Positions 7,107 to 27,877 of a DNA stretch of 64,000 nucleotides are shown one piece after another (the stretch's first letter is position 1; the number at the start of each line of letters is the position of its first letter). The notes below the pieces were generated by a model that worked only from the letters and a program-made list of their open reading frames with translations, did not search any database and was not told the DNA's origin. The stretch is from positions 186,001 through 250,000 of IMG/VR virus record IMGVR_UViG_3300021137_000001. The stretch is one strand, 5' to 3'. The position numbers and the translations under genes are program-made.

Positions 7107-9419
7107 ATGGCAATTAATTCCAATCCTGAGATCGAAGAAATCATTGCGTCAGCTACAGAGTTAGCACGTGACTACAGGCATGAATACGTAACATTAGAGC
7201 ATTTGTTGATTGCATTAATTGAGTTTAGATCATTTAAAAAGTTACTAACTGAATACGGTGTTGATACTGCTCCGTTGCTAACAGACTTGTACGAGTATAC
7301 CGCACAGCAACATCACATTGTTGACTTAACAGACACAGAGAAAGAAATTGTTCCACAACGTACACACAGCTTAGAACGTGTGTTTAATCGTGCATTTACG
7401 CAGGTATTGTTTACAGCACGTGAGCAAATGGAGCCGGTTGATTTGTTCCTAAGCATCAGCCAAGAAACTAATAGTCACGCCGCTTACTTTATGCTTAAAT
7501 GGGGTATTGTTCGTAAAGACTTAGTTAAGTATTACGCTGAAAAATACATCGACAAAGGTGCTAAAGCGAAAGATCCAAAAATTAAGCAAGATTATGCAGA
7601 TGCAATTTTAGAAGAGTATTGCACAAACTTAAATGCAGTTGCTACTGATGGTAAGATTGATCCGGTTATTGGTCGCGAGTTCGAATTAGAAGAGATTGCG
7701 CAAGTACTTGCACGTCGACATAAATCAAACGTATTGATGATTGGTGATCCGGGTGTAGGTAAAACTGCTATTGCAGAAGGACTTGCATACAAAATCGTTA
7801 ACGGTGATGTACCAGCTTACTTGAAACCATACACAGTCTACAACTTAGAGATTGGTAGTTTACTTGCAGGTAGTAAATATCGCGGCGAGTTTGAAGAAAA
7901 ACTTAAAGATGTATTGGGTGCGCTTAATGAAAAGGGTAATGCAATTCTATTCATTGATGAAGCACATCAAATGCAAGGTGCTGGCGCAGGTAGTTCAAGC
8001 AGTGTAGACTTTGCTAATATGCTTAAACCAGCATTAGCCAAAGGTGGCATTAAAGTTATTGCAAGTACTACATACGAAGAATACACACAATCGTTTGAAA
8101 AAGATCGTGCATTAATGCGTCGTTTCTATAAACTAAACATTGATGAGCCAAGCCCAGAAGTAGCTAAAGATATTTTACTTGGACTTAAAGGACACTTTGA
8201 ACAATTTCATAATGGTGTAATTTTAGATGAAGCAATTGAACTTGCTGTTGATTTAAGTGTACGTTATCAAACAGACAAACGTTTACCTGATAAAGCCATT
8301 GACTTGATTGATATGAGTTGTGCTCGTCTTAAAATTAACAATCCAACTTGGGTTGTTGGTGCAGACGACATTATCGAAACACTTGCTAAAGCAACTAAGA
8401 TTCCAAAAGAGAACTTTGATAGCAAACATGCATCGACTTCATTGCCAAGTTTAGAAAGCAATATTAAAGATAAACTATACGGACAAGATAGTGCTGTTGA
8501 CGCAGTACTTGAGAAGATTTATGTTGCTAAGGCTGGTTTAAAAGCACACAACAAACCAATTGGTAACTTCTTATTCTTAGGCCCAACCGGTACAGGTAAA
8601 ACAGAGTTAGCTAAATTGCTTAGTGAAAACTTAGGTATGAAATTAATCCGCTTTGATATGAGTGAATACCAAGAGAAGCATGCAATGGCTAAACTTATTG
8701 GTGCTCCTCCGGGCTATGTTGGGTACGAAGATGGTAACTTAGGCGGCGGCTTGTTAATCAGTGAAGTCGAACGTAACCCACATTCAATTATCTTATTAGA
8801 TGAAATTGAAAAAGCTCACCCAGACATTAGTAACTTGTTGTTGCAAATTATGGACGAAGGCACAATTACTGGTAGTAACGGTAAGAAAGCGGATTGTCGC
8901 AATGCTATGCTAGTGCTAACAAGTAACTTAGGTTCAGCAGACAACGAGCAAAACAACATTGGCTTTGGGCGCGAGTTGCAAAAGTCAGGCGAAGATGATA
9001 GTGCTGTTAAAAAGTTCTTCAAACCAGAGTTTCGCAATCGTTTAGATGCAGTGGTTAAGTTTAACGGACTAGATAAGATTAGCATGAAGAAGATTGTTGT
9101 TAAATTCTTAAACGAGCTTAATGAATTACTAGCAGAGAAATCAATTAAACTACGTTCATCTGAAGCATTAGTCGATCACTTAGTCGAAGTTGGATTTGAC
9201 AGAGCAATGGGCGCACGTCCTTTAGCACGTAAGATTAGCGAGCTAATTAAAGTGCCATTAAGTAAAAAAATACTGTTTGAAAACATTAGTGTCGGTAGTA
9301 CAATTACGGCAGACTATAGCAACGAAGCAGTTGAGTTTATTGTTGTAGAACCAATTGATGAAATTGCATTATTGGAAAACAAAACAGTTGACGATAATGG
9401 CTTTATTATAGTAGAATAA
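7107..9419 (+). CDS. clpA: ClpA-type AAA+ chaperone
   Basis: Clp N-domain (HEYVTLEHLL), Walker A GDPGVGKT and GPTGTGKT, IGF ClpP-docking loop. Confidence 0.93.
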   Translation: MAINSNPEIEEIIASATELARDYRHEYVTLEHLLIALIEFRSFKKLLTEYGVDTAPLLTDLYEYTAQQHHIVDLTDTEKEIVPQRTHSLERVFNRAFTQVLFTAREQMEPVDLFLSISQETNSHAAYFMLKWGIVRKDLVKYYAEKYIDKGAKAKDPKIKQDYADAILEEYCTNLNAVATDGKIDPVIGREFELEEIAQVLARRHKSNVLMIGDPGVGKTAIAEGLAYKIVNGDVPAYLKPYTVYNLEIGSLLAGSKYRGEFEEKLKDVLGALNEKGNAILFIDEAHQMQGAGAGSSSSVDFANMLKPALAKGGIKVIASTTYEEYTQSFEKDRALMRRFYKLNIDEPSPEVAKDILLGLKGHFEQFHNGVILDEAIELAVDLSVRYQTDKRLPDKAIDLIDMSCARLKINNPTWVVGADDIIETLAKATKIPKENFDSKHASTSLPSLESNIKDKLYGQDSAVDAVLEKIYVAKAGLKAHNKPIGNFLFLGPTGTGKTELAKLLSENLGMKLIRFDMSEYQEKHAMAKLIGAPPGYVGYEDGNLGGGLLISEVERNPHSIILLDEIEKAHPDISNLLLQIMDEGTITGSNGKKADCRNAMLVLTSNLGSADNEQNNIGFGRELQKSGEDDSAVKKFFKPEFRNRLDAVVKFNGLDKISMKKIVVKFLNELNELLAEKSIKLRSSEALVDHLVEVGFDRAMGARPLARKISELIKVPLSKKILFENISVGSTITADYSNEAVEFIVVEPIDEIALLENKTVDDNGFIIVE

Positions 9420-11006: not shown

Positions 11007-12167
11007 ATGTTTTTATCACAACTTTTTGAATCAACAATTAAACATGCATCATTTTGCTTTGGTCGCATGAACCCACCTACTCTCGGGCACGGGCAATTAA
11101 TTGACACAGTAGCGCAAGCTGCACAAGGTGGAGATTACTTTGTGTTTGCAAGTGGTACACAAGATAAGAAAAAGAATCCGTTAGATTACGCTACAAAAAT
11201 TAAATTCCTCAGAGCTTTGTTTCCCGAACAAGCAAGTCACATTGTAAACGACCCAACACTAAAAACTATCATGCAAGTTGCTGAGTGGTTGTATGCACAG
11301 GGTTATAGATCAGTTACGTTTGTAGCTGGTAGCGATAGACTTGATAGCTTTAAACAATTATTAACTAGTTACAATGGTGTCGAAGGTAAAGATGTTTACT
11401 ACAAATTTGATGCTATTAACTTTGTAAGCAGTGGCGAACGTGACCCAGATGCTGATGGTATTGCTGGTATTAGTGCTAGTGGCGCACGTGAAGCGGCTGT
11501 TAATAGTGATATCAATGCATTTGCGCAAGCAACAGGCGCCGGTAAACTAACACAACCATTGTATGATGCAGTACGTAAGGGTATGTTGTTAGAAGGCTTA
11601 CATGAAAGTTTTCCGGAAGTCTACAGCAACATTGTTGATGCTGCTATTAATGCCAGACGAAAAGGTAAGAAAGTAGTTAAGTCAGCGGGCGGTTACTATA
11701 AAGTTACTGACAAGACTGATTTGGCGACCGAAATAGTTCCTAACGAAGAATACTTATTAAAACAAAGAACTATTATTGCTCGTGTTAAAACAATTGATTT
11801 TGAAATTATTAAAAATTTCGAAAGACCATTTGGACAAGAACGAGTAGAATTAGCACATAGTCTACCTATCGATCCAAAAACTAACAGGTTTATAAATGTT
11901 GACGACTGGGTCAATGGATTAGATAAGCTACGTCAAAAATATTTTGCCAAAGAATACGACGATCTTGAGACAGAAAAACGTAAACTTAGAACTGAACTTA
12001 AGATTCTAAGAAAAACTGAGAAAGCATATACAGAATTAGCAGAGTGCAGTGGCTACATTCCAAAGAATAAGAAAGAAGCAAAAGATCCACGCTGGAGTAA
12101 TTCTCTTACTGTAGATATTAAACCAGGTGCGATTAACAAAAATCTCAAAGCATTGCGCTTAATTTAA
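11007..12167 (+). CDS. Phage cytidyltransferase-like (HIGH superfamily) protein with appended modules
   Basis: FGRMNPPTLGH, KNPL, VAGSDR, ISAS..R; leader MFLSQLFE. Confidence 0.8.
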   Translation: MFLSQLFESTIKHASFCFGRMNPPTLGHGQLIDTVAQAAQGGDYFVFASGTQDKKKNPLDYATKIKFLRALFPEQASHIVNDPTLKTIMQVAEWLYAQGYRSVTFVAGSDRLDSFKQLLTSYNGVEGKDVYYKFDAINFVSSGERDPDADGIAGISASGAREAAVNSDINAFAQATGAGKLTQPLYDAVRKGMLLEGLHESFPEVYSNIVDAAINARRKGKKVVKSAGGYYKVTDKTDLATEIVPNEEYLLKQRTIIARVKTIDFEIIKNFERPFGQERVELAHSLPIDPKTNRFINVDDWVNGLDKLRQKYFAKEYDDLETEKRKLRTELKILRKTEKAYTELAECSGYIPKNKKEAKDPRWSNSLTVDIKPGAINKNLKALRLI

Positions 12168-12168
12168 T

Positions 12169-12480
12169 ATGAATGCAGTAAATCTTACAGTTGAAGTACA
12201 CTGTTTAAAGCCAAGCTGGGTCAATCACGAAAACAACAAATATCGCATATATGTCAATGATGATTTATTAACCGAACGCACATGGATATGGGAATTAAAT
12301 ACCTTAATCAATGAAAATATCTGGGTCATTATTCCCGCAAATAGTACTAATACTGTTAGACTCGAACAAATTCTACAAGATAAATCAGTAGCTCAATTCG
12401 CACTTCGTAATTTACAAGTTGCCGATGCGCCATTTACCTCAGAACAAATCAATGATCTAACCATAAGTTTTACATTGTAA
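12169..12480 (+). CDS. Hypothetical protein
   Basis: 103 aa, YRIYVNDDLLTERTW. Confidence 0.7.
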   Translation: MNAVNLTVEVHCLKPSWVNHENNKYRIYVNDDLLTERTWIWELNTLINENIWVIIPANSTNTVRLEQILQDKSVAQFALRNLQVADAPFTSEQINDLTISFTL

Positions 12481-12491
12481 TAAATACATAT

Positions 12492-12665
12492 ATGAAAATA
12501 AATGACATTATTCAACGACCAGACTTAACCGAAGATGCAACAGGCGGCGGTACAAGTGCCGGCGCAATTGCTACAATCCCAGGTGTTGGTACAGGTGCTA
12601 AAGTGGGCGCACTGTTCGGTGGCACTTATAAACAACCTAAAACTAAAAAGAGAAAAACGAAATGA
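12492..12665 (+). CDS. Small Gly-rich protein with basic tail (57 aa, not in the ORF track)
   Basis: Follows ATAAATA at 12480; MKINDIIQRPDLTE|DATGGGTSAGAIA...; stop overlaps the next ATG. Confidence 0.75.
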   Translation: MKINDIIQRPDLTEDATGGGTSAGAIATIPGVGTGAKVGALFGGTYKQPKTKKRKTK

Positions 12666-15544
12666 TGCGTAAACTATTAGAAGCTATGACTAAATTTGCT
12701 AACCCTGAACAAAAACCGGGTGAGCAGTGGAAGGGTACAGATAAGGGTACTCCGGGCAATAAATTAGTAGGTAGCGCAGATGAAAGTGTGCTTAAAGATT
12801 TAAGCAAAGGTCAAACTCCAAAAACTAAAGAAGAAGAATTAGCTGAAGCATTTGCTAACTTTAACGAAGATGACTTAGGTGTAGAAGAAAAACGCCCACA
12901 TCGCACTGGTTCACGTGCAGATAGAGTTGGCGAACGTGGACATAAAGAACAACCTCGTTACACAACAGTTAAAGACAATGTAGACGAAGCAACTGCTGCA
13001 GAACTTAAAGTAGGAGATCACGTTACAGCAAATACAAGTAAAGGTGAAAAGTGGAATGAATCTGCTGATATGTTTAAAGCTGGACAACGTGCTATTAAGA
13101 ATATAAAATCTACAGAGCAACAACGTAAAGCAGAAGCAAACAAAATGGCGCAAGCGCAATCACAGATTGATGTAGATAAAGAAAACGAGCGTGATAGATT
13201 TAGTCAAGAAGAATTATACCCATCAGATGACTCACATGATTTAGATGAAGGTGCTGCTGACGTTTACTCAATAACATCAGAAAGAAATGGTAGAGAGCGT
13301 AGTAAGTCTGGTACGTTAGCTGAACTTATTGAATACTATGGCTACACATTAGAAACTGGTAAATCATACGAACATGAACGTGGTAACAGCAAAATCAATC
13401 TTAACCCGAAAAATATTGAATCATTGGTGCAAAATTTAAACAATGCTAAAAGCAATGCAGCGGCTAATGGACAAAGTAACGAACGCTTTTACGTAGATAA
13501 TGGTAACATGGCAGAAGGTAAACACTTTAAAACAGCTTACGGTTGGGCAGGTGGACGTAATGAAAAGACTGGTAAAATGTACAAACATCCAGATCAAATC
13601 AAAGCAGACCGAGAAGCAAACAAAATGGCACAAGCTCAAGCACAAATTGATGCAGACAGAGAAAAAGAACGTGACAGATTTAGTCAAGAAGAACTATATC
13701 CATCAGATGACTCACACGATTTAGATGAAGCAGCTTATGATCCAACTATGGGATATTCTGGCAGCAAATGGAATTATACTCCATCTAAAATTGAGCGACA
13801 AAAAGAAAAAAGAGTGCCGCTACGAACATTCCAAGAATTGTGTGATATGTTAGGTATAAGCCGACACGCCATGGCAAATATTGCAAAAAAAGTATCCGAC
13901 TTTCCGAAACCAATCCCGGGTATTGGCGGTAAAAAAACATATTATGATCCACAAAAATTTATACAGTGGGCTAAACAAAACGATATAAAAAAATATCTAC
14001 CTAATCAATCTAACGCAGAAGTAGCGGAAGGATGGGGTGCTGATACACAGAAAGCTGAATCAAGTCGCAGTACTGCGGCATGGGATACGCTACGTGCTAA
14101 GTACGCCAATGATCCGGCAATTATCAAAAGATTAAACTATCTTGAGCGTATGAACTGGACAGCAGCCGCAGCAGAAAAGAAAGCTAACGCTGGTGAAATT
14201 AAAGGTGTTGCTGAAAGCAAAGCAGATACAACAGGTTCGTGGGTTGTACATAGTGGTAGCAAAGTAAAGAAATTTAAAACACGCGATGGTGCTAAAGCCT
14301 ATGCTGAAAAGAATGGCGGTAAAGTAGCATCAAGCGAATTCTATGCAGACAAAGTACAAAAAGATATTAACGAAGATGTATCTTCAACAGATCCATTAGA
14401 AGGTGCGTTACTTAATGCTATCCAAGAGTTAGTTAGTCAAGGTCATAAAGATGTAGACCCGATGGTGTTAACTAATATGGTGGTTGCGGCTACAAGTCAG
14501 CCATTCTTACTTAAAGACTTAGTTGATGCTAATAACAACAGTTTAGCAATACAGCATTATATTGATAGTATTAGCCCAAGCAAAGTTAAGTTCTCAACTG
14601 ATACATTAACAGTTAAGAATGAAGATCCAAGTAAAGACAAAGCTAAATCACAAGCTGGTGTAAGCAGTATGGCCAGCAGAGCTGCAAATCGTAGCAGACT
14701 TGGTGAAGGTACAGAAGGTTTGCCAGCTAAAGCAATTGATATGATTAAGAAAATTGCAATGTCAACAGCAACACCAGAACATAAAAAAGCCGCAATTGAT
14801 GCTATTGTTGCTAAGTTCAGTAGTGTGACAGAAATGCGCCCAGATGCTGTTCCTAGTGATAGCACTGCAAGTCCATTGACTTATGCAGAGGTAACTGAAG
14901 GTATCGAAACTCCTTTACAAAATAAAGAAGATTATACTGCTAAACGTAAAGCACTACAAGATATACAATTAGATCCAGATACCAACAAAGATCCACAACT
15001 TGCAGCTGAATTAGCACGTAGATTGGGTAGTTTGAATCAACAGTACACAGACTTGCAAAGCAAATTGCGTGAATTTAAAGAATCACGTGGGCATAAAGCT
15101 ATTGCTACTAAGTTAGGTAATATAGATCGTATGCAGAATGTGCAAATTCCTACACCAGCAGAACGTAGAGAACAATTACGTATTGCTAAAGCTAAGGAAG
15201 AAGTTGGTAAAAAGCAAGTTAAAGAATTTGCGGCTCCAGGTGCTAATCCTGCTCCAGTAACAAATGCTACTCAACCAGTTGTTGATCCAGCCGCAGCGCA
15301 AAAGGTGGCAACTGCAACAAGTACAATTAAAAGTGCAACTGGTTCTACTGTAGCGGCACCTGTATTAGCTACAGCACTCGATGCTGCAAGTCAAGGACAA
15401 GCAAATCCGGCGCAAGTAAAAGCAATTGCACCGATTGCTAATGTAGTTGATGCTGCAACTAAAGATCCTAAACTAGCTGGACAGTTTAAGACACTGGCGA
15501 CGCAAGCACAACAATCACTAAAAGCACAACAAAAACCGCAATAA
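12662..15544 (+). CDS. 960 aa modular protein, putative internal head polyprotein
   Basis: Short modules separated by hydrophobic-x-E|small-residue sites; internal 40 aa duplication; HTH-like module. Confidence 0.7.
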   Translation: MMRKLLEAMTKFANPEQKPGEQWKGTDKGTPGNKLVGSADESVLKDLSKGQTPKTKEEELAEAFANFNEDDLGVEEKRPHRTGSRADRVGERGHKEQPRYTTVKDNVDEATAAELKVGDHVTANTSKGEKWNESADMFKAGQRAIKNIKSTEQQRKAEANKMAQAQSQIDVDKENERDRFSQEELYPSDDSHDLDEGAADVYSITSERNGRERSKSGTLAELIEYYGYTLETGKSYEHERGNSKINLNPKNIESLVQNLNNAKSNAAANGQSNERFYVDNGNMAEGKHFKTAYGWAGGRNEKTGKMYKHPDQIKADREANKMAQAQAQIDADREKERDRFSQEELYPSDDSHDLDEAAYDPTMGYSGSKWNYTPSKIERQKEKRVPLRTFQELCDMLGISRHAMANIAKKVSDFPKPIPGIGGKKTYYDPQKFIQWAKQNDIKKYLPNQSNAEVAEGWGADTQKAESSRSTAAWDTLRAKYANDPAIIKRLNYLERMNWTAAAAEKKANAGEIKGVAESKADTTGSWVVHSGSKVKKFKTRDGAKAYAEKNGGKVASSEFYADKVQKDINEDVSSTDPLEGALLNAIQELVSQGHKDVDPMVLTNMVVAATSQPFLLKDLVDANNNSLAIQHYIDSISPSKVKFSTDTLTVKNEDPSKDKAKSQAGVSSMASRAANRSRLGEGTEGLPAKAIDMIKKIAMSTATPEHKKAAIDAIVAKFSSVTEMRPDAVPSDSTASPLTYAEVTEGIETPLQNKEDYTAKRKALQDIQLDPDTNKDPQLAAELARRLGSLNQQYTDLQSKLREFKESRGHKAIATKLGNIDRMQNVQIPTPAERREQLRIAKAKEEVGKKQVKEFAAPGANPAPVTNATQPVVDPAAAQKVATATSTIKSATGSTVAAPVLATALDAASQGQANPAQVKAIAPIANVVDAATKDPKLAGQFKTLATQAQQSLKAQQKPQ
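13132..13730 (+). repeat. Imperfect ~119 nt direct repeat (13132-13250 and 13612-13730)
   Basis: Both copies encode EANKMAQAQxQIDxDxExERDRFSQEELYPSDDSHDLDE. Confidence 0.95.
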
Positions 15545-15549
15545 GTAAA

Positions 15550-16008
15550 TTAATCGTCAATTTCCTCAGGTGCTGCAATTGCTGTACCATCTGAGGATAA
15601 TTCGTGATCTACTTTCTTCAAATATACTTTAACTGCTGATAGCTTAGTAAACATACGGGCAACACGTTTCTTGTTAAGATATACGCAAAACTTACCAGAC
15701 AAATCTTTCTTAACTTCGGCAAGTGTATCACGCTTATACCCAATGTTTGCTGTATATACTGGTTCAATGTCTGCAATTGTATCAAAGCCAAGTAATATAC
15801 TATCACCTTTGTTGCCCACTTTAACTAACTTTGTATCAAAGTAACCACTATTATTTGCCTGTCGCATAATCATTGCCGCGAGCTTAACATTGTTCTCGGC
15901 TACTTGAATTGTGCCATCCGTATCAATCCAATAATCTTCACCCTCGTATGGTCCGTCGATTGGATCACCAATAATGTTACTTAGTTGCTCGGATATAGTT
16001 TGCGTCAT
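15550..16008 (-). CDS. Hypothetical protein with its own sigma70 promoter
   Basis: 152 aa ORF, GAGA SD, promoter at 16039-16067 on the minus strand. Confidence 0.75.
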   Translation of the reverse strand: MTQTISEQLSNIIGDPIDGPYEGEDYWIDTDGTIQVAENNVKLAAMIMRQANNSGYFDTKLVKVGNKGDSILLGFDTIADIEPVYTANIGYKRDTLAEVKKDLSGKFCVYLNKKRVARMFTKLSAVKVYLKKVDHELSSDGTAIAAPEEIDD

Positions 16009-16137: not shown

Positions 16138-16809
16138 ATGCGAATACAAGATTTTAATCCAGTAATTAAAGAAGATAACGAAATGTCCGATGTTGTTACA
16201 GCACACGGGCTAGTGGGCAAATCATTGCATAATCCTACTGCACGTCAAGAATACTTTGATTATATGACACACTTGCGCAACAAGCATGGTAAAGAATATA
16301 GCACACGTGTACATCAAAAAGCAACGGCACTTGCTAAACCAGTAGAAGAAACAATTGTAAAAGTGGGCAGTCAATATGAACTTAAATCACACACTGGTAA
16401 GAACTTGGGCAAGTACCCAACTCGAGCTGGTGCTGAGAAACGTGAACAACAGGTTAATTATTTTAAGCACGTTAAAGAAGATGCGTGGACTGGTGATAAT
16501 CCAGCATGGAACAATGGCACAGATCAATGGCATAGTGCAGATGATGGATCTGGCGGTGGAGTTAGTGGTGGTGCGCCAGCAGCTCCATTAACTGGGGCAT
16601 TACCAATTGAAGAAGATTTTAATCCACAAGATGTTGTTAGTGTTGATGTTCCACTATTAATACGTTTACTTGAATATGCTCGTGAAGATGCAAAAACAGA
16701 CATGGATTTACATAATGTAACAGAACGTTTAATTGCCTTAAGTCAAGAAGGCAATACACTAACAATGCAAGATTATGACACAATTTGCAACACCAAGGAA
16801 ACTGATTAA
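16138..16809 (+). CDS. Modular hypothetical protein, putative head-internal
   Basis: Leader MRIQDF..IKE|D; junctions VEE|T, VKE|D, IEE|D; ATAAATA at 16103. Confidence 0.7.
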   Translation: MRIQDFNPVIKEDNEMSDVVTAHGLVGKSLHNPTARQEYFDYMTHLRNKHGKEYSTRVHQKATALAKPVEETIVKVGSQYELKSHTGKNLGKYPTRAGAEKREQQVNYFKHVKEDAWTGDNPAWNNGTDQWHSADDGSGGGVSGGAPAAPLTGALPIEEDFNPQDVVSVDVPLLIRLLEYAREDAKTDMDLHNVTERLIALSQEGNTLTMQDYDTICNTKETD

Positions 16810-19142
16810 TGGCATCATTACTGTATACATATATTATTAATACATCAGGACCGCGAGCATTTACTATGCCCGATGGTTTTAAAGATACCGCAGTACTTCA
16901 TTTATGGGGTGCAGGCGGTGGAGCAGGTTCAAATGCCGTAGGCGGTGGCGGTGGTTATTCCAGAACAACAGTAACAATACAAAAAGGTGACATAGTCGAA
17001 CTTGGAGTCGGCTTACCAGGTAGTCCAGCAACTGGAAACACTCCCGGCACAGGTGGCGGCAGTTCAATCGGTCTACGTTATAGTGGAGGTCCTGGAGGTC
17101 CCGGTAGTACAATATCTGGCGATGATAATATCGGCGGAGCAGGTGGTGGTGGTGGCGGCGCAACTGTTGTTATGGTTAATGGCATTGCGGTCGGAGTTGC
17201 CGGCGGCGGAGGCGGTGGGGGCGGTGGAAGTGGTTACCAAACAGGTGCGGCTGGATTGGCCGGTGGAGTATACACTGCATTAACATTAAACACACAAGGC
17301 GGTGCTGGCGCTGCTGCGTATGCAGCTGGAGGCGGTGGTGGTGGTGGCTATTTTGGCGGCGCAGCTGGTGCAGGCAAAGGTGACGATGTTGGTGGTGGCA
17401 ATGGCGGGTCTGGCGGTGAAAATTACGGCACAATTGCTATTATAGGGTCGGGAACAATTAGTGGTGGCGTAGGACAAACTTACGCACCAACAGCAAACTT
17501 TGGACACGCTGGTTACGGCGGTTATGCAGTAATTGAGTTTACCCGTAAATTCCAAATATACACAAAAGATTCAGGTACATGGCATCAAATATTAAATGCG
17601 TGGGTTAAAACACCTGCACATCAAATTCCAGCCACAATAGTACATCAACCAGAAACAGTATCATTTACTACTAATTCAACTTTTACAGTACCGGCCGGAG
17701 TAACTGCACTTACTGTAACTGCTATCGGTGGTGGAGGTGGTGGTGGAGGTGCAGATGGTAATGCAAGTGGCGGATATTACTATGATGAAGCCGGTGTATT
17801 AAAAGGTGGCTACCCGGGTGAGAAAGTGTCAGGTACTATCGCAGTCGCCCCTGGCCAAATATATACAATAACTCCGGGTAATGGTGGTGAAGGTGGACAA
17901 GGTAGAGCTAGTAGTGCAGTCGGTGGTGCAGCAGGTACTGGTTATTTTCCGGGTGGTAGAGGCGGATATGCTGGTGCATCAGGATCATCGGGAGCAGGTG
18001 GTGGCGGTGGCGCAGCAACAGTAATATTACTTGCTGGCAATCCGTTATTAGTAGCCGGTGGTGGCGGAGGCGCTGGTGGATCAGGCAATGGTGCCTATGG
18101 TGTTGCTACAATCGGTACATATACATCTGGAACAACTGGTGCACAAGGACAAGACAAATCAGGCGATGGTGGTGGAGGCGGTGGCGGAGGTGGCGGTCAC
18201 ACACAAGGCGGTTCTGGTGGACCAACACGTGGTGGCGACAGTGGCGGATATTCAGGTCAAACTGGTAAATCATTAGCACCATCAGGAACAACAGTAGGTG
18301 TTGGAACTAACGGTGGTTTATATGCAAGTGGCAACGGTGGACGTGGATCTGTCACTGTAACATACACATTACCAACTGAATATATTACTATTGCAGACGG
18401 TGGCTGGAAAGAAATTGAACAAGTATATGAAAAATATAACGGTGTATGGAATCCAGTATTAAGCATAGAAACAGTAAATGATAAACGTGGTGCACGTTAT
18501 ACTACACCTGGTACGTATGTATGGGTATGCCCTAGTGACATTGTTAGAGTTAAAGCAATGGTATACGGTGCTGGTGGTTCAGGTACTGGGGGTGCTGGTG
18601 GAGCAGGTGGATTTACAACTGATTATACAACAGTAACTCCAGGTGCGCATTATGCAGTGGTAGTCGGTGCTGGTGCAGAACCAACAGGCTCGGCAGCTGG
18701 TCAAGATAGTAGTTTTAATGTAACAGTAGTTGCCCATGGTGGAGCACACGGCGCGGCACAATCAGCTGGAACAGATGCTGGTGGTGCAGGTGGTATATCA
18801 GCAGGTGGAGATATAAATCTAACTGGGGTGGCTGGTACAGCAGGAAACGCTCTTTATTCATACTACTACTATTGGTGGGGTGGCTGGAATAGCTACTACG
18901 GTTGGGGAGGTTATAACTATTATAACTACAATGGTATCGGTAATTACGCCAACGGGTATTATGGCTATAATTATAACTACGGTTATAACAACTATGGTTG
19001 GGGCGGATGGTATGGCTGGGGATGGCCGTACTCTTATCAATCTGGTTATAACTATGGTACGCCAGGAGTTGGTTATGATGGAATCGGTGGTGGGGCAGTT
19101 ACTACTACAGGCGCACCGGGTGCAGTACTTATTGTGTACTAG
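16809..19142 (+). CDS. Glycine-rich virion, tail-fibre or adhesin-like protein
   Basis: Three Gly-rich domains each opening with a xGxGG poly-Gly run; Tyr/Trp/Asn/Gly-rich C-terminal insert. Confidence 0.7.
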   Translation: MASLLYTYIINTSGPRAFTMPDGFKDTAVLHLWGAGGGAGSNAVGGGGGYSRTTVTIQKGDIVELGVGLPGSPATGNTPGTGGGSSIGLRYSGGPGGPGSTISGDDNIGGAGGGGGGATVVMVNGIAVGVAGGGGGGGGGSGYQTGAAGLAGGVYTALTLNTQGGAGAAAYAAGGGGGGGYFGGAAGAGKGDDVGGGNGGSGGENYGTIAIIGSGTISGGVGQTYAPTANFGHAGYGGYAVIEFTRKFQIYTKDSGTWHQILNAWVKTPAHQIPATIVHQPETVSFTTNSTFTVPAGVTALTVTAIGGGGGGGGADGNASGGYYYDEAGVLKGGYPGEKVSGTIAVAPGQIYTITPGNGGEGGQGRASSAVGGAAGTGYFPGGRGGYAGASGSSGAGGGGGAATVILLAGNPLLVAGGGGGAGGSGNGAYGVATIGTYTSGTTGAQGQDKSGDGGGGGGGGGGHTQGGSGGPTRGGDSGGYSGQTGKSLAPSGTTVGVGTNGGLYASGNGGRGSVTVTYTLPTEYITIADGGWKEIEQVYEKYNGVWNPVLSIETVNDKRGARYTTPGTYVWVCPSDIVRVKAMVYGAGGSGTGGAGGAGGFTTDYTTVTPGAHYAVVVGAGAEPTGSAAGQDSSFNVTVVAHGGAHGAAQSAGTDAGGAGGISAGGDINLTGVAGTAGNALYSYYYYWWGGWNSYYGWGGYNYYNYNGIGNYANGYYGYNYNYGYNNYGWGGWYGWGWPYSYQSGYNYGTPGVGYDGIGGGAVTTTGAPGAVLIVY

Positions 19143-19180: not shown

Positions 19181-20005
19181 ATGAAAAGATTTCTAATAGC
19201 AATAGCATTAATCGCAGTAAGTTTTAACAGTTATGCATGGAATCAACGTGCGCCAGGTACAATACAACAATGTCAACAACATATTCCATATGGTGCCGAA
19301 TCATCAGCAATGCCATTACAACCAATATGCCGTCAAGCATATCTAGTTGAATACGATGTTGCAAATAAGATTCCAAACAATGTAAGTTGGACACTACAAC
19401 CACAAAATGCACTTGGTTGTGTTGCTCGTTCAAATGCATTTGCAGCAGATCAAAGTGTTCCGAATGGTGCATCACCTGCAGAGTATGCAGGTACAAACTA
19501 CGATAAAGGACATATGGCTCCAGATGGTGATCAATCGTGGGACCAACAAGTTGAATTTGAATCATTCTTAATGACTAACATGAATCCACAAGCAGGTTCG
19601 TTAAATCGTGGTATTTGGAAACTATTAGAAACATCATTTCGTGGCTGGGCATATCAATTAAACACACCATTTACAGCATACGCAGGTGCGTTATACAATG
19701 CACAAGATAAAACAATTGGTAAAGGCATACGGGTAAGTCATGCATATTATAAAATTGTAATCAATGATAAAACTGGTGAAGTAGCAGGTTGGTTATTTCC
19801 ACATGTTGCACCATATCCAAATCTTGGCAACGACTTAACTAAATTCCGCACACCAATTGCACAAATCGAACAACAAGCTGGTGTTAAGTTTGCATTTCCA
19901 GCAAATGCTAAAGAACTTGCTCCGGGACAAGAGTGGAAAGTTGACTTTGGTGCACTAACAAACCAAAAACGTAAGTTATGTGGTGCTAACGCAACAACTG
20001 ATTAA
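19181..20005 (+). CDS. Secreted DNA/RNA non-specific endonuclease (NucA/Serratia family)
   Basis: Signal peptide, YDKGHMAP, ESFLMTNMNPQ, LNRGIWKLLE. Confidence 0.9.
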   Translation: MKRFLIAIALIAVSFNSYAWNQRAPGTIQQCQQHIPYGAESSAMPLQPICRQAYLVEYDVANKIPNNVSWTLQPQNALGCVARSNAFAADQSVPNGASPAEYAGTNYDKGHMAPDGDQSWDQQVEFESFLMTNMNPQAGSLNRGIWKLLETSFRGWAYQLNTPFTAYAGALYNAQDKTIGKGIRVSHAYYKIVINDKTGEVAGWLFPHVAPYPNLGNDLTKFRTPIAQIEQQAGVKFAFPANAKELAPGQEWKVDFGALTNQKRKLCGANATTD

Positions 20006-20462: not shown

Positions 20463-20494
20463 ACTCATTGTAGTATTTTAAATAAATACTTAAT

Positions 20495-21859
20495 ATGAGA
20501 ATAATTGACCTATTAACCGAAGCCGTGAGCAGTGTAGTATACCACTACACTAATCTCGATGCCGCCGCAAAGATACTTACAACAGGGCAGTTTGCACTTA
20601 GCTCGACTCTTGGAAGTATAGAAGAAAAGTTTGCTCCGAAAGGTCTGCCATACTTTCTAAGTACAACACGTACAAGACGCGGAGGATATCACTCTAACGC
20701 AATCGGTGATGGTGCCGCAATGTTTAACTTAGATGGCAACTATTACAATCAGCGTTACAAAGGTGGCCCAATTGATTATTGGGGCGACAGACATAATGAC
20801 TATGGTCGTACCGCAGAAGCCGAGGATAGAATATTTAGTAAAGAACCAACAATGCCTGCTGGTGGCATTACATCAGTACATATATTTGTTAAGCCATTAC
20901 CGGTTGCAGCAGTACCGGGTTCATCAGTTGACATACGTGCCCGTGAATCGATATCTAGTTATGCCGCACGTGCTCGTACTGCATTGTTAGCTGCTAAGAA
21001 AGCCGGCATACCTGCATACTTGTACGAAGATAGACTAGGTTGGGTAAATCAAGACCCTACTGCACGTATAGCAATCACTGGTTCACGTGATACATTACGT
21101 GGACAAATTCCAATGTACAATCCAAGTCACCCACCAAGACAGTATATGGCTAAGTGGTTAGAGTTAATGTACAAAGATAGCACTAAAGCACTTAGCACAC
21201 AAAACTTTGGCGATTTACATTCGTTAATATACAATGATCCATATTGGCTTAAAGAGATGGTTACAAGTTTATCATCCGATTTAAGTAATGCTCGCAAACC
21301 ATCAGCTGGGGCAGATAGAGAAGTTGCTGTTAAAATTATTTCGTATATGAATCGACATGGCTTACATACAGTAACAGACTTTATTATGGCATTGCGTAAA
21401 AAGTGGACGATAATTAAAAACAAAGAGCAAGAAGCAAAGTATGATGCTGAACAAGCCGACTACGCAAAGTTTCAAGCAAAAGAAAAAGCAGCACAGCCAG
21501 AGTTAGCAGAGTCAACCAATCCTAAGTCAGCATCACCTGATGAAATTTTTGATTATATAGAAAGCATACACACTGGTCCGGGTTTACACGATACTAACGA
21601 TGATGAACTAAGTACAGAAGAATGGGTACATCAGTTTGATTCATTTGAATTACAACCAGTCAACTTATCAACACTTGCGTTAAAAGCAGGTTCAAACAAA
21701 CAAGCAAAAATAGATCAATACGCACAAAGTCAAGAAGAGTTCCCACCAATTGTAATAGACGGTTCAAGTGATTGGATTATTGATGGGTATCATCGTGCTA
21801 ATGCAGCCGCACAACGTGGCGACACAACAATAATGGCATACGTAGGAGTAGGAAGATGA
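20495..21859 (+). CDS. Two-module protein with C-terminal ParB/Srx-like domain
   Basis: Leader MRIIDLLTE|A; junction LAE|S; PPIVID..IIDGYHRANAA. Confidence 0.7.
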   Translation: MRIIDLLTEAVSSVVYHYTNLDAAAKILTTGQFALSSTLGSIEEKFAPKGLPYFLSTTRTRRGGYHSNAIGDGAAMFNLDGNYYNQRYKGGPIDYWGDRHNDYGRTAEAEDRIFSKEPTMPAGGITSVHIFVKPLPVAAVPGSSVDIRARESISSYAARARTALLAAKKAGIPAYLYEDRLGWVNQDPTARIAITGSRDTLRGQIPMYNPSHPPRQYMAKWLELMYKDSTKALSTQNFGDLHSLIYNDPYWLKEMVTSLSSDLSNARKPSAGADREVAVKIISYMNRHGLHTVTDFIMALRKKWTIIKNKEQEAKYDAEQADYAKFQAKEKAAQPELAESTNPKSASPDEIFDYIESIHTGPGLHDTNDDELSTEEWVHQFDSFELQPVNLSTLALKAGSNKQAKIDQYAQSQEEFPPIVIDGSSDWIIDGYHRANAAAQRGDTTIMAYVGVGR

Positions 21860-27849: not shown

Positions 27850-27856
27850 ATAAATA
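27850..27856 (+). promoter_or_regulatory. T4-late-like (T)ATAAATA promoter motif, representative copy
   Basis: ATAAATA sits shortly upstream of starts at 2238, 9441, 12480, 16103, 19155, 20482, 27850, 55928 and 57429, and on the minus strand before all five endonuclease genes. Confidence 0.65.
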
Positions 27857-27877
27857 CACTATAATAAGAGAATCCTG

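Follow-up and report, generated by a model that had tools for sequence, protein, structure and literature searches.

Introduction

[quoted passage not shown] The T4 capsid-targeting sequence, MKTYQEFIAE, is cut after Glu (PMC8442874); the known gp21 motif is L/I-x-E↓ (PMC9026906). Each internal protein is encoded by its own gene and is cut once, next to the leader. Multiple cuts after Glu within one polypeptide by a gp21-related head protease have been described for the T4 core proteins gp22, gp67 and gp68 and for the head proteins and propeptides of phiKZ, 201phi2-1 and SPN3US (PMC9026906, PMC10052503), but in those systems the cleaved parts are scaffolds or propeptides that are discarded. 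Polyvalent proteins of phages and conjugative elements combine many (2-15) unrelated domains in one polypeptide, in variable order among relatives, and are proposed to be processed by their own metallopeptidase domains, which are frequent but not universal, possibly after delivery (PMC5512222). In the polyproteins of RNA viruses, protease sites lie at the boundaries of functional units of one translation product.

We describe here a 960-aa protein of an uncultured 329-kb T4-related jumbo phage (IMG/VR record IMGVR_UViG_3300021137_000001) that looks like a string of small independent proteins joined by cutting sites for the phage's own head protease. The window that was analysed is a stretch of 64,000 nucleotides, positions 186,001 to 250,000 of that record, and all coordinates below refer to it. 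A first-pass annotation made from the sequence alone had proposed that the protein is a protease-processed polyprotein of short modules, and our computational analyses support this interpretation, although cleavage itself has not been shown.

Results

The 960-aa protein and its neighbours

The ORF at 12662..15544 (+) encodes 960 aa, and all 14 junctions listed in the first-pass annotation are present, at aa 69, 109, 133, 196, 285, 356, 456, 518, 571, 682, 724, 746, 807 and 855. The motif strings that it had reported for neighbouring ORFs are also present, although the ParB-like domain that it assigned to the ORF at 20495 was not recovered by Pfam. The internal duplication is real: the two copies of 119 nt, at 13132..13250 (+) (aa about 158-196, ending at LDE↓G, where the arrow marks the putative cleavage point) and 13612..13730 (+) (aa about 318-356, ending at LDE↓A), are about 87% identical and lie 480 nt apart, and identity stops one base after the Glu codon of LDE in both copies.

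The first-pass annotation had overlooked an N-terminal leader, MMRKLLE↓A (12662..12682 (+), aa 1-7), a putative short capsid-targeting sequence ending in an L-x-E site; L-x-E is kept in 73 of 74 aligned homologues. It had also missed a family of capsid-targeting-like leaders on neighbouring genes. Of 439 predicted proteins, 17 start with M[KR]x2-3[EDQ][FIL], against 2.5 expected, and nine of these lie in the window. The leader of the 960-aa protein is shorter than the MRxxEFIxE leaders of its neighbours and than the T4 sequence, and it is less like the leaders of its neighbours. Immediately upstream is a 57-aa ORF (12492..12665 (+)) with a capsid-targeting-like leader (MKINDIIQRPDLTE↓D), whose stop overlaps the start of the 960-aa ORF (ATGA). 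It is conserved as a 56-aa ORF in the contig L007, whereas in the relative L011 the homologous sequence is the C-terminus of a 241-aa leader-bearing protein. A late-promoter-like motif, ATAAATAC (12480..12487 (+)), lies 4 nt before the ATG of the 57-aa ORF, which is translationally coupled to the 960-aa ORF. The genome holds 29 copies of this motif, 23 of them within 40 nt upstream of a start codon on the same strand, including those of the portal and tail-fibre-like genes and three other leader-bearing genes. The motif appears to be a variant of the T4 late promoter TATAAATA, which was itself not clearly enriched upstream of genes.

The genome encodes a matching protease. A Pfam search identified a Peptidase_S77 (gp21-type) prohead protease (PF03420, 95.5 bits) and a gp23-type capsid protein (PF07068, 278.7 bits), with a coiled-coil, gp22-like scaffold gene between them, about 120 kb from the 960-aa ORF. 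The protease matches the T4 gp21 structure 5JBL at E 3.8e-14, with the Ser-Arg-Gly stretch aligned. A prediction of a protease-peptide complex gave no answer and is not evidence either way.

The site motif is enriched and specific

We next examined whether the junction motif is more frequent than expected from composition. [LIVMF]xE[GASDT] occurs 13 times in the 960-aa protein against 5.2 expected (p about 0.001, 1000 shuffles), which ranks second of 318 proteins of at least 100 aa in the genome, behind only the scaffold (18 against 3.7); the protease itself ranks fourth. In 90 homologues the count is 952 against 489 expected. In a non-redundant pan-family sequence of 8041 aa it is 99 against 45 (z 8.5), and neither Asp at P1 (46 against 48) nor other spacings showed enrichment. 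Plain hydrophobic-x-Glu (hxE) without the P1' condition is only modestly enriched in the protein (22 against 13.6, z 2.6), and it is also mildly enriched genome-wide (1.77 against 1.50 per 100 aa), as expected for amphipathic helices. Several hxE sites lie inside confidently predicted helices with bulky P1' residues (aa 221, 224, 392, 589, 804) and are probably not sites. The Glu at hxE sites followed by a small residue is conserved 0.77 on average, against 0.47 for other Glu, and the sites are conserved where the flanking sequence is not.

The AlphaFold model resembles beads on a string, with about 10 separate modules. Ten of the 14 listed sites fall in linkers with pLDDT<50, which make up 28% of the residues (P = 9e-4). 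Based on the model, the products would mostly be folded mini-proteins of 5-16 kDa rather than the small peptides inferred in the first-pass annotation.

Module boundaries coincide with the sites

To test whether module gain and loss respects the sites, we compared the protein with its homologues, which range from 571 to 1663 aa, carry different module sets and are not colinear. Gapped BLAST coverage maps blurred the module borders and were replaced with ungapped HSP chains. Clean insertions of 53, 64, 89 and 128 aa between the closest homologues begin and end exactly at x-x-E. In the 960-aa protein, 8 of 15 module boundaries coincide with sites, against 2.8 expected (p about 0.0015). Family-wide, boundary-to-site distances peak sharply at 0 and -3, and 316 of 506 insertion end points (62%) lie within 4 aa of a site, against 16% at random. 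Not every boundary conforms, however; those at aa 535, 331 and 874 have no hxE site, and the large insertion at aa 127-129 is bounded by K-G-E and R-G-E, not by a hydrophobic P3.

The modules differ in conservation and distribution. The N-terminal region (12683..12988 (+), aa 8-109) is conserved and mostly disordered, carries conserved sites LAE↓A (62) and FNE↓D (69), and ends near VDE↓A (109), where most homologues diverge. The module at aa 197-285 (13250..13516 (+)), a predicted alpha/beta domain with pLDDT 86-97 between LDE↓G and MAE↓G, is present or absent as an exact 89-aa unit, being absent from the homologue P0003 with breakpoints at the two sites. Free-standing homologues of 85-127 aa (P0099-P0102, 56-65% identity) and an 89-aa BFVD entry (54% identity, TM 0.88) have ends that match those of the module. 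The module at aa 357-456 (13730..14029 (+)), a linker plus a helix-turn-helix (HTH)-like domain ending at VAE↓G, gave weak HTH hits, the only hits obtained when the protein was searched against Pfam and PHROGs; twelve library hits are confined to this interval, including stand-alone proteins of 82-87 aa. It is followed by a predicted helical domain with pLDDT 91-94 (14030..14215 (+), aa 457-518) that ends at VAE↓S and to which 7 hits are confined. The beta-beta-alpha-beta module at aa 519-571 (14216..14374 (+)), ending at INE↓D, is an exact 53-aa insertion relative to the homologues P0005 and P0006. Of 150 library-wide hits, 106 are confined to it, in proteins of 129-1748 aa; 108 of 150 matched stretches end at aa 566-568, and the hit is usually followed by GV[AST]E↓G.

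The core module (14375..14707 (+), aa 572-682), which lies between INE↓D and the invariant RLGE↓, is the most conserved. At least 13 unrelated upstream contexts of this module all end in [LIV(T)]-x-E↓[GSD]. The core module also exists as stand-alone proteins of 116-173 aa, made of a T4-like leader (such as MKSSEFIRE↓S or MKINEIILE↓S) plus the module, and these stop where the polyprotein has RLGE↓. In L011 such a gene sits directly upstream of an orthologue that lacks the module. Three modules (core, aa 197-285 and HTH-like) also exist as small separate proteins whose ends match the sites. Downstream of the core, the module at aa 683-746 (14708..14899 (+)), between GTE↓G and VTE↓G, is a 64-aa insertion absent from six of the eight closest homologues compared. 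The conserved helical module at aa 747-807 (14900..15082 (+)) ends at FKE↓S, a site kept in 60 of 72 homologues. The basic C-terminal part (15083..15541 (+), aa 808-960, net charge +10) holds the conserved VKE↓F/Y at 855 and a conserved Ala/Gln/Pro-rich predicted helical bundle (pLDDT 88-94).

Searches for characterized relatives

Megablast and tblastn searches with the whole protein, the core module and module 197-285 found nothing in 50,697 phage records, which include T4, and a profile of the core module found nothing in Vibrio phage 2.275.O or PA5oct. No sequence homology to T4 IPI, IPII, IPIII or Alt was detected in these searches or with Pfam and PHROGs. The syntenic DnaJ-ClpA...PolB block of the cultured relative PA5oct encodes virion proteins detected by mass spectrometry, but they look like tail fibres, with no leaders and no motif enrichment, and lend no support to the polyprotein interpretation. 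A fold search of the PDB with the whole model gave nothing below E 0.1, because the inter-domain geometry is arbitrary; the viral library gave one useful module-level hit, and the ESM Atlas gave only weak helix-hairpin-helix-like leads at TM about 0.5 for the core module. No peptidase domain was found by Pfam in the protein or in the eight long homologues scanned, and none of the enzymatic domains typical of polyvalent proteins was found in the protein. The L011 orthologue, however, carries an LPD11 domain (E 1.5e-27) as one of its modules, and the homologue P0090 has an RMF-like module just under the cut-off.

Discussion

We favor the interpretation, with a probability of roughly 0.7, that the 960-aa protein is a capsid-targeted polyprotein of internal-protein-like modules. 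In the mechanism that we propose, the short leader ending in L-L-E takes the protein into the scaffolding core of the prohead, where the gp21-type protease cuts it at about a dozen hydrophobic-x-Glu sites followed by a small residue, which sit in flexible linkers. This would free about 10-14 small folded modules, the size of T4 internal proteins, which probably stay in the head and enter the host with the DNA. Because each module carries its own flanking sites, modules could be inserted, deleted, duplicated or moved out into separate leader-bearing genes without disturbing the others, which would explain the length range of the family. Packaging, cleavage, retention and injection of the products, and what the modules do, are inferred; there is no proteomic or biochemical evidence.

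One could envisage instead that the protein is an uncleaved multidomain protein in which the hydrophobic-x-Glu-Gly pattern is a structural end-of-domain or linker motif, for example a helix or strand cap followed by Gly. The motifs do sit at domain ends and linker starts, where Gly and Ser are common anyway, and hxE is slightly enriched in the whole proteome. We consider this unlikely, given that the motif equals the known specificity of the protease family that the phage encodes, is strongest in the phage's own scaffold and protease, is specific for Glu over Asp and for one spacing, and recurs at the ends of unrelated folds. In addition, stand-alone versions of the core module carry a cleavable leader in place of the upstream site and a stop codon in place of the downstream site. 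An accessory scaffold or core protein, analogous in function to gp22, gp67 or gp68 and chopped up only so that it can leave the prohead and make room for DNA, would also account for the many sites, the leader-like N-terminus and the conserved N- and C-terminal parts, and T4 core proteins are indeed cut into multiple fragments (PMC9026906). This, too, seems improbable. The phage already has a scaffold gene in its head cluster, and site density is lower in the 960-aa protein (2.3 hxE per 100 aa) than in the scaffold (7.1). The middle of the protein is a fast-changing set of small globular folds that also exist as independent genes in other phages and include HTH-like, RMF-like, KOW-like and LPD11 modules, and the predicted fragments are the size of T4 internal proteins, which are retained, rather than of expelled peptides (PMC8442874).

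Processing at these sites by a different enzyme, such as a host protease or the putative peptidase part of the neighbouring 1065-aa amidoligase protein, or processing after injection rather than in the prohead, has a precedent in the proposal for polyvalent proteins (PMC5512222), and the first-pass annotation had noted a peptidase next door. However, the site motif is that of gp21-type proteases, and Pfam recovered no peptidase in the neighbouring protein at E below 0.001. We regard this alternative as very unlikely.

The proposed polyprotein shares with the T4 internal proteins small predicted products and a set that is highly variable between relatives; its putative leader, shorter than that of T4, ends in hydrophobic-x-Glu, and the leaders of neighbouring genes and of the stand-alone module genes are very like that of T4. 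It differs in that about 10-20 modules share one leader and would be separated by internal cuts. Compared with the cleaved core proteins and propeptides of T4, phiKZ, 201phi2-1 and SPN3US, the stretches between sites are folded, independently evolving modules that also exist as separate genes. Like polyvalent proteins, it is a large protein of many unrelated small domains in shuffled order, it is predicted to be delivered with the DNA, and its modules also occur solo near structural genes, as reported for LPD domains; processing by the prohead protease at regular inter-module sites, however, is not described in the reviews that we read, and our literature searches found no description of such a phage polyprotein. 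Compared with RNA virus polyproteins, the protease is encoded elsewhere in the genome of a dsDNA tailed phage and would act inside the assembling capsid, and the units are accessory, not core replication or capsid proteins. A more far-reaching possibility, which we consider about as likely as not, is that this phage lineage uses a true polyprotein strategy for its injected arsenal, with one leader carrying up to about 20 interchangeable mini-proteins into the prohead and modules moving freely between the polyprotein and stand-alone leader-bearing genes, a cassette system for fast turnover of host-takeover or anti-defence factors.

If the proposed mechanism is correct, a leader plus hydrophobic-x-Glu-small at linkers gives a simple sequence rule for delimiting dozens of unknown small phage proteins in metagenomes, which are likely early-acting host-directed factors, and suggests a natural design for packaging several proteins at once into T4-type capsids. 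It would also link the polyvalent-protein concept to T4-type head maturation and add a new way of organising phage cargo. T4 uses one gene per internal protein and polyvalent proteins use self-processing; here the head protease would double as a polyprotein-processing enzyme, and the cleavage motif would act as a universal joint that lets modules be added, lost or duplicated in frame.

Genome context of the putative polyprotein

The virus record from which the window (bases 186001-250000) derives is 329,321 bp long and carries direct terminal repeats, that is, it is a complete jumbo phage genome. Outside the window, the genome encodes a T4 gp21-type prohead protease (Pfam Peptidase_S77, 95.5 bits, genome 320468-321109) and a gp23-type major capsid protein (278.7 bits), with a 365-aa coiled-coil gene between the two. 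The protease aligns with the solved T4 gp21 structure 5JBL at E 3.8e-14, and the capsid protein aligns with mature gp23-type chains, its first 42 residues holding four hydrophobic-x-Glu (hxE) sites. By capsid protein and DNA polymerase, the nearest cultured phages are Vibrio phage 2.275.O (67%), PA5oct, 121Q/PBECO4, Phosso and Atu_ph07, which belong to the T4-related group 2 jumbo phages that use the S77 head protease (PMC7824862). T4 gp21 cuts after Glu in the short motif L/I-x-E; it cuts the core proteins gp22, gp67 and gp68 into several fragments (PMC9026906), but cuts the internal proteins once, next to the 10-residue capsid-targeting sequence (CTS) MKTYQEFIAE (PMC8442874, PMC3012670).

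Enrichment and specificity of the hydrophobic-x-Glu motif

The ORF at 12662..15544 (+) encodes 960 residues. The first-pass annotation had proposed that this protein is divided by 14 junctions of the type hydrophobic-x-Glu, mostly followed by a small residue, and all 14 are present. The internal duplication noted there was also found; it is 119 nt long (13132-13250 and 13612-13730, spaced 480 nt apart), and the identity of the two copies ends one base after the Glu codon of LDE in both. Its left end also starts right after a Glu (KAE/A and DRE/A, where the slash follows the Glu).

We next examined whether the motif is more frequent than expected by chance. [LIVMF]xE followed by G, A, S, D or T occurs 13 times in the protein against 5.2 expected from 1000 shuffles (p about 0.001), which ranks second among the 318 predicted proteins of at least 100 aa. 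The scaffold ranks first (18 against 3.7) and the protease itself fourth; the scaffold is the natural positive control, so this motif is very likely the site of the protease in this phage. The third-ranking protein (10 against 3.7), of 518 aa (genome 18006-19562, outside the window), sits between two genes with leader-like N-termini (17407 and 19562) and may be a second processed head protein. The 90 homologues found in public metagenomes show 952 sites against 489 expected. In a non-redundant pan-family sequence built from 47 segments (8041 aa), the motif occurs 99 times against 45.4 expected (z 8.5), the highest value of all 20 possible P1 residues. In contrast, Asp at P1 is not enriched (46 against 48), nor are spacings one residue shorter or longer, and Glu followed by a small residue without a hydrophobic P3 is depleted. 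Although a mild excess of plain hxE exists genome-wide (1.77 against 1.50 per 100 aa), as expected from amphipathic helices, this background does not explain the P1' preference or the Glu specificity.

Predicted structure and position of the sites

An AlphaFold2 model built on a 77-sequence alignment has a mean pLDDT of 68 and shows about ten confidently folded small modules separated by low-confidence linkers. Ten of the 14 junctions fall inside stretches with pLDDT<50, which make up 28% of the residues (P = 9e-4). The hxE sites that were not listed in the first-pass annotation, at aa 221, 224, 392, 589 and 804, lie inside confident helices and have Leu, Tyr or Phe at P1'. Cutting at the hxE+small sites would give 15 pieces of 0.8-15.8 kDa, and most of those in the middle and C-terminal parts would be 5-16 kDa, some acidic and some basic.

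Module boundaries and conservation among relatives

The family is strongly modular, with lengths from 571 to 1663 aa. A conserved N-terminal part (aa about 10-109), a core module (572-682), a helical module (747-800) and a C-terminal bundle (about 875-955) are shared, but the modules between them vary widely. Using ungapped HSP chains, we found that 8 of 15 module boundaries in the query lie within 4 residues of an hxE bond, against 2.8 expected (p about 0.0015). The strongest boundaries are at 571 (exactly INE/D), 682 (exactly LGE/G), 745 (VTE/G), 287 (MAE/G) and 105 (VDE/A); however, boundaries at aa 535, 331 and 874 have no site, and the large insertion at aa 127-129 is bounded by K-G-E and R-G-E. 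Family-wide, the distance from a boundary to the nearest site peaks sharply at 0 (169 against 25 expected) and at -3 (132 against 23).

Clean indels were seen between the closest orthologues. Aa 684-748 is a 64-residue insertion between GTE/ and VTE/, aa 515-568 is a 53-residue insertion between VAE/ and INE/, and aa 195-284 is an 89-residue insertion between LDE/ and MAE/, whereas the homologue P0007 has a 128-residue insertion between VNE/ and MAE/. Over 253 roughly distinct insertion events in the family, 316 of 506 end points lie within 4 residues of a site, whereas a random position does so 16% of the time; although the events are not fully independent, the effect is large.

Glu at hxE+small sites is conserved 0.77 on average (median 0.88), against 0.47 for other Glu residues. 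The clearest case is the junction before the core module, where an alignment shows at least 13 unrelated upstream sequences that all end in Ile, Val or Leu (twice Thr), any residue at P2, and Glu, followed by G, S or D. The module itself ends with an invariant RLGE followed by unrelated sequence. A distant 960-aa homologue (P0056, 39% identical over 39% of the query) has quite different middle modules, yet each of them still ends in VEE/G, VDE/G, LAE/G, VAE/G, MSE/G, LKE/G, LGE/S, ISE/S or VDE/A.

Modules as independent proteins

We searched the model against viral structures, and found an 89-aa stand-alone protein matching one module at 54% identity, TM 0.88 and rmsd 1.1 Å. The output gave no query range, and we take the module to be aa 197-285. 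A length-restricted sequence search with module 197-285 then found proteins of 85-127 aa (56-65% identity), whose first and last residues coincide within a few residues with the two flanking sites; one of them sits in an array of small ORFs next to a T4-type portal gene. The same search with the core module found 16 proteins of 81-173 aa (52-72% identity). In the 13 that were aligned (116-173 aa), nearly every one starts with a T4-CTS-like leader, such as MKSSEFIRE/S, MKINEIILE/S or MRASEFLNE/A, and each ends at ...RAANRNRG(L)-stop, exactly where the polyprotein has RLGE/. In the shortest ones, the residue after the Glu of the leader aligns within one position of the residue after INE/ in the polyprotein.

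In the relative L011, the gene order is conserved (DnaJ, ClpA-like, glycosyltransferase, NMNAT-like, and so on), and a 134-aa leader-plus-core gene sits directly upstream of a 1129-aa orthologue that starts MMKKLLE/S, has the usual N- and C-terminal modules, and lacks the core module. The same mature product can therefore be encoded either way at the same locus. That orthologue (L011:10407-13793) also carries, at aa 215-282, a clear Pfam LPD11 domain (large polyvalent protein-associated domain 11, E 1.5e-27) as one module between VAE/D and MNE/A. Other hints of module function, which remains inferred, are an HTH-like module in the target and, both under Pfam cut-offs, modules in homologues that resemble ribosome modulation factor (P0090 aa 452-495, Pfam RMF, E 8.9e-6, 26.1 bits, just under the cut-off) and a KOW motif (P0005 aa 906-936, E 0.0097). 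By eye, many other modules appear to share a beta-hairpin plus 'F-x-S/T-x-x-E-A' helix pattern.

An exhaustive HMMER search of 1.84 billion representatives with aa 357-571 gave 150 matched stretches, of which 125 are confined to a single inter-site interval (106 in 519-571, 12 in 357-456 and 7 in 457-518). In addition, 108 stretches end at aa 566-568, just before INE/. The hits lie in proteins of 82-1748 aa, many with CTS-like leaders, and the 53-aa module is typically followed by GV[AST]E/G.

Neighbouring genes and a shared upstream motif

Seventeen of 439 predicted proteins start with M[KR]x2-3[EDQ][FIL], against 2.5 expected from internal Met positions. Nine of them lie in the window, at 12492, 16138, 20495, 22590, 23048, 23875, 24806, 25299 and 27878, and leaders of this family are also found at genome positions 33077, 70098, 70521, 71122 and 166078; examples from the whole family are MRAREFIIE/G, MRFKEILNE/V and MKINEILAE/S. 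Two neighbours with looser leaders, at 11007 and 31075, carry enzyme domains, an NMNAT-like protein and an amidoligase protein. Like the window, the syntenic locus L007 has leaders of this family, and the region between the ClpA-like gene and the DNA polymerase therefore looks like a large locus of capsid-targeted proteins. The ClpA/ClpB-like double AAA+ protein is encoded at 7107-9419 and upstream; in relatives a DnaJ-like protein sits beside it, and the pair is conserved across PA5oct, Vibrio phage 2.275.O and the metagenomic relatives.

The motif ATAAATAC, which appears to resemble the T4 late promoter, occurs 29 times in the genome (in the window at 12480-12487, 20482-20489 and 27850-27857), 23 of them within 40 nt upstream of a start codon. 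These include the portal and tail-fibre-like genes and four leader-bearing genes, one of which is the 57-aa ORF coupled to the target. In eight cases the motif lies only 3-5 nt from the ATG, which would give leaderless late mRNAs if transcription starts about 6 nt downstream, as in T4. The 57-aa ORF (12492-12665) has a leader, a Gly/Ala/Thr-rich middle and a basic tail, and its stop overlaps the start of the target; it is conserved as 56 aa in L007, whereas in L011 it is fused as the C-terminus of a 241-aa leader-bearing protein.

Downstream of the target, the only minus-strand gene in this stretch (15550-16008, 152 aa) is conserved in L007 and L011 and has a weak LlaJI restriction endonuclease-like hit (E 6.7e-5, 22.7 bits, under the cut-off). 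A 777-aa protein (16809-19142) that directly follows a leader-bearing 223-aa protein is extremely rich in Gly, with a Tyr/Asn/Trp/Gly tail (Pfam Gly_rich_2, E 9e-9), and is conserved in L011. A DNA/RNA non-specific endonuclease (19181-20005, Endonuclease_NS, E 1.5e-35) has a signal-peptide-like N-terminus, is preceded by TATAAATA 20 nt upstream, and is conserved in L007.

Discussion

No cultured phage was found to carry the family, the virion proteome of PA5oct could not be transferred to it, and a protease-peptide complex prediction gave no answer; packaging, cleavage, retention and injection are all inferred. One could envisage an uncleaved multidomain protein in which the motif is merely a structural linker, but this is unlikely, as it is hard to reconcile with the Glu and spacing specificity, with the scaffold control, and with the equivalence of leader and stop codon in the stand-alone genes. 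An accessory scaffold that is merely degraded would fit the site density, yet it does not fit the globular, fast-changing, independently occurring modules or the presence of a separate scaffold gene, and we regard it as similarly doubtful. Processing by another protease, or after injection, seems the least probable of these alternatives.

Multiple head-protease cuts in one chain are known for the T4 core proteins and for the propeptides of phiKZ and SPN3US (PMC9026906, PMC10052503), where the cut pieces are discarded parts and not independent modules. The protein resembles the polyvalent proteins of Iyer et al. (PMC5512222) in architecture, and through LPD11 in one orthologue, but lacks their in-built peptidase and would use the head protease instead. 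We found no description of such a phage polyprotein in the searchable literature.

In the best-supported reading, the protein enters the prohead core by its leader and is cut by the gp21-type protease at the linker sites. It would work like the T4 internal proteins, but with many products per leader, yielding a set of mini-proteins the size of T4 internal proteins, whose composition changes quickly between relatives because each module brings its own sites.
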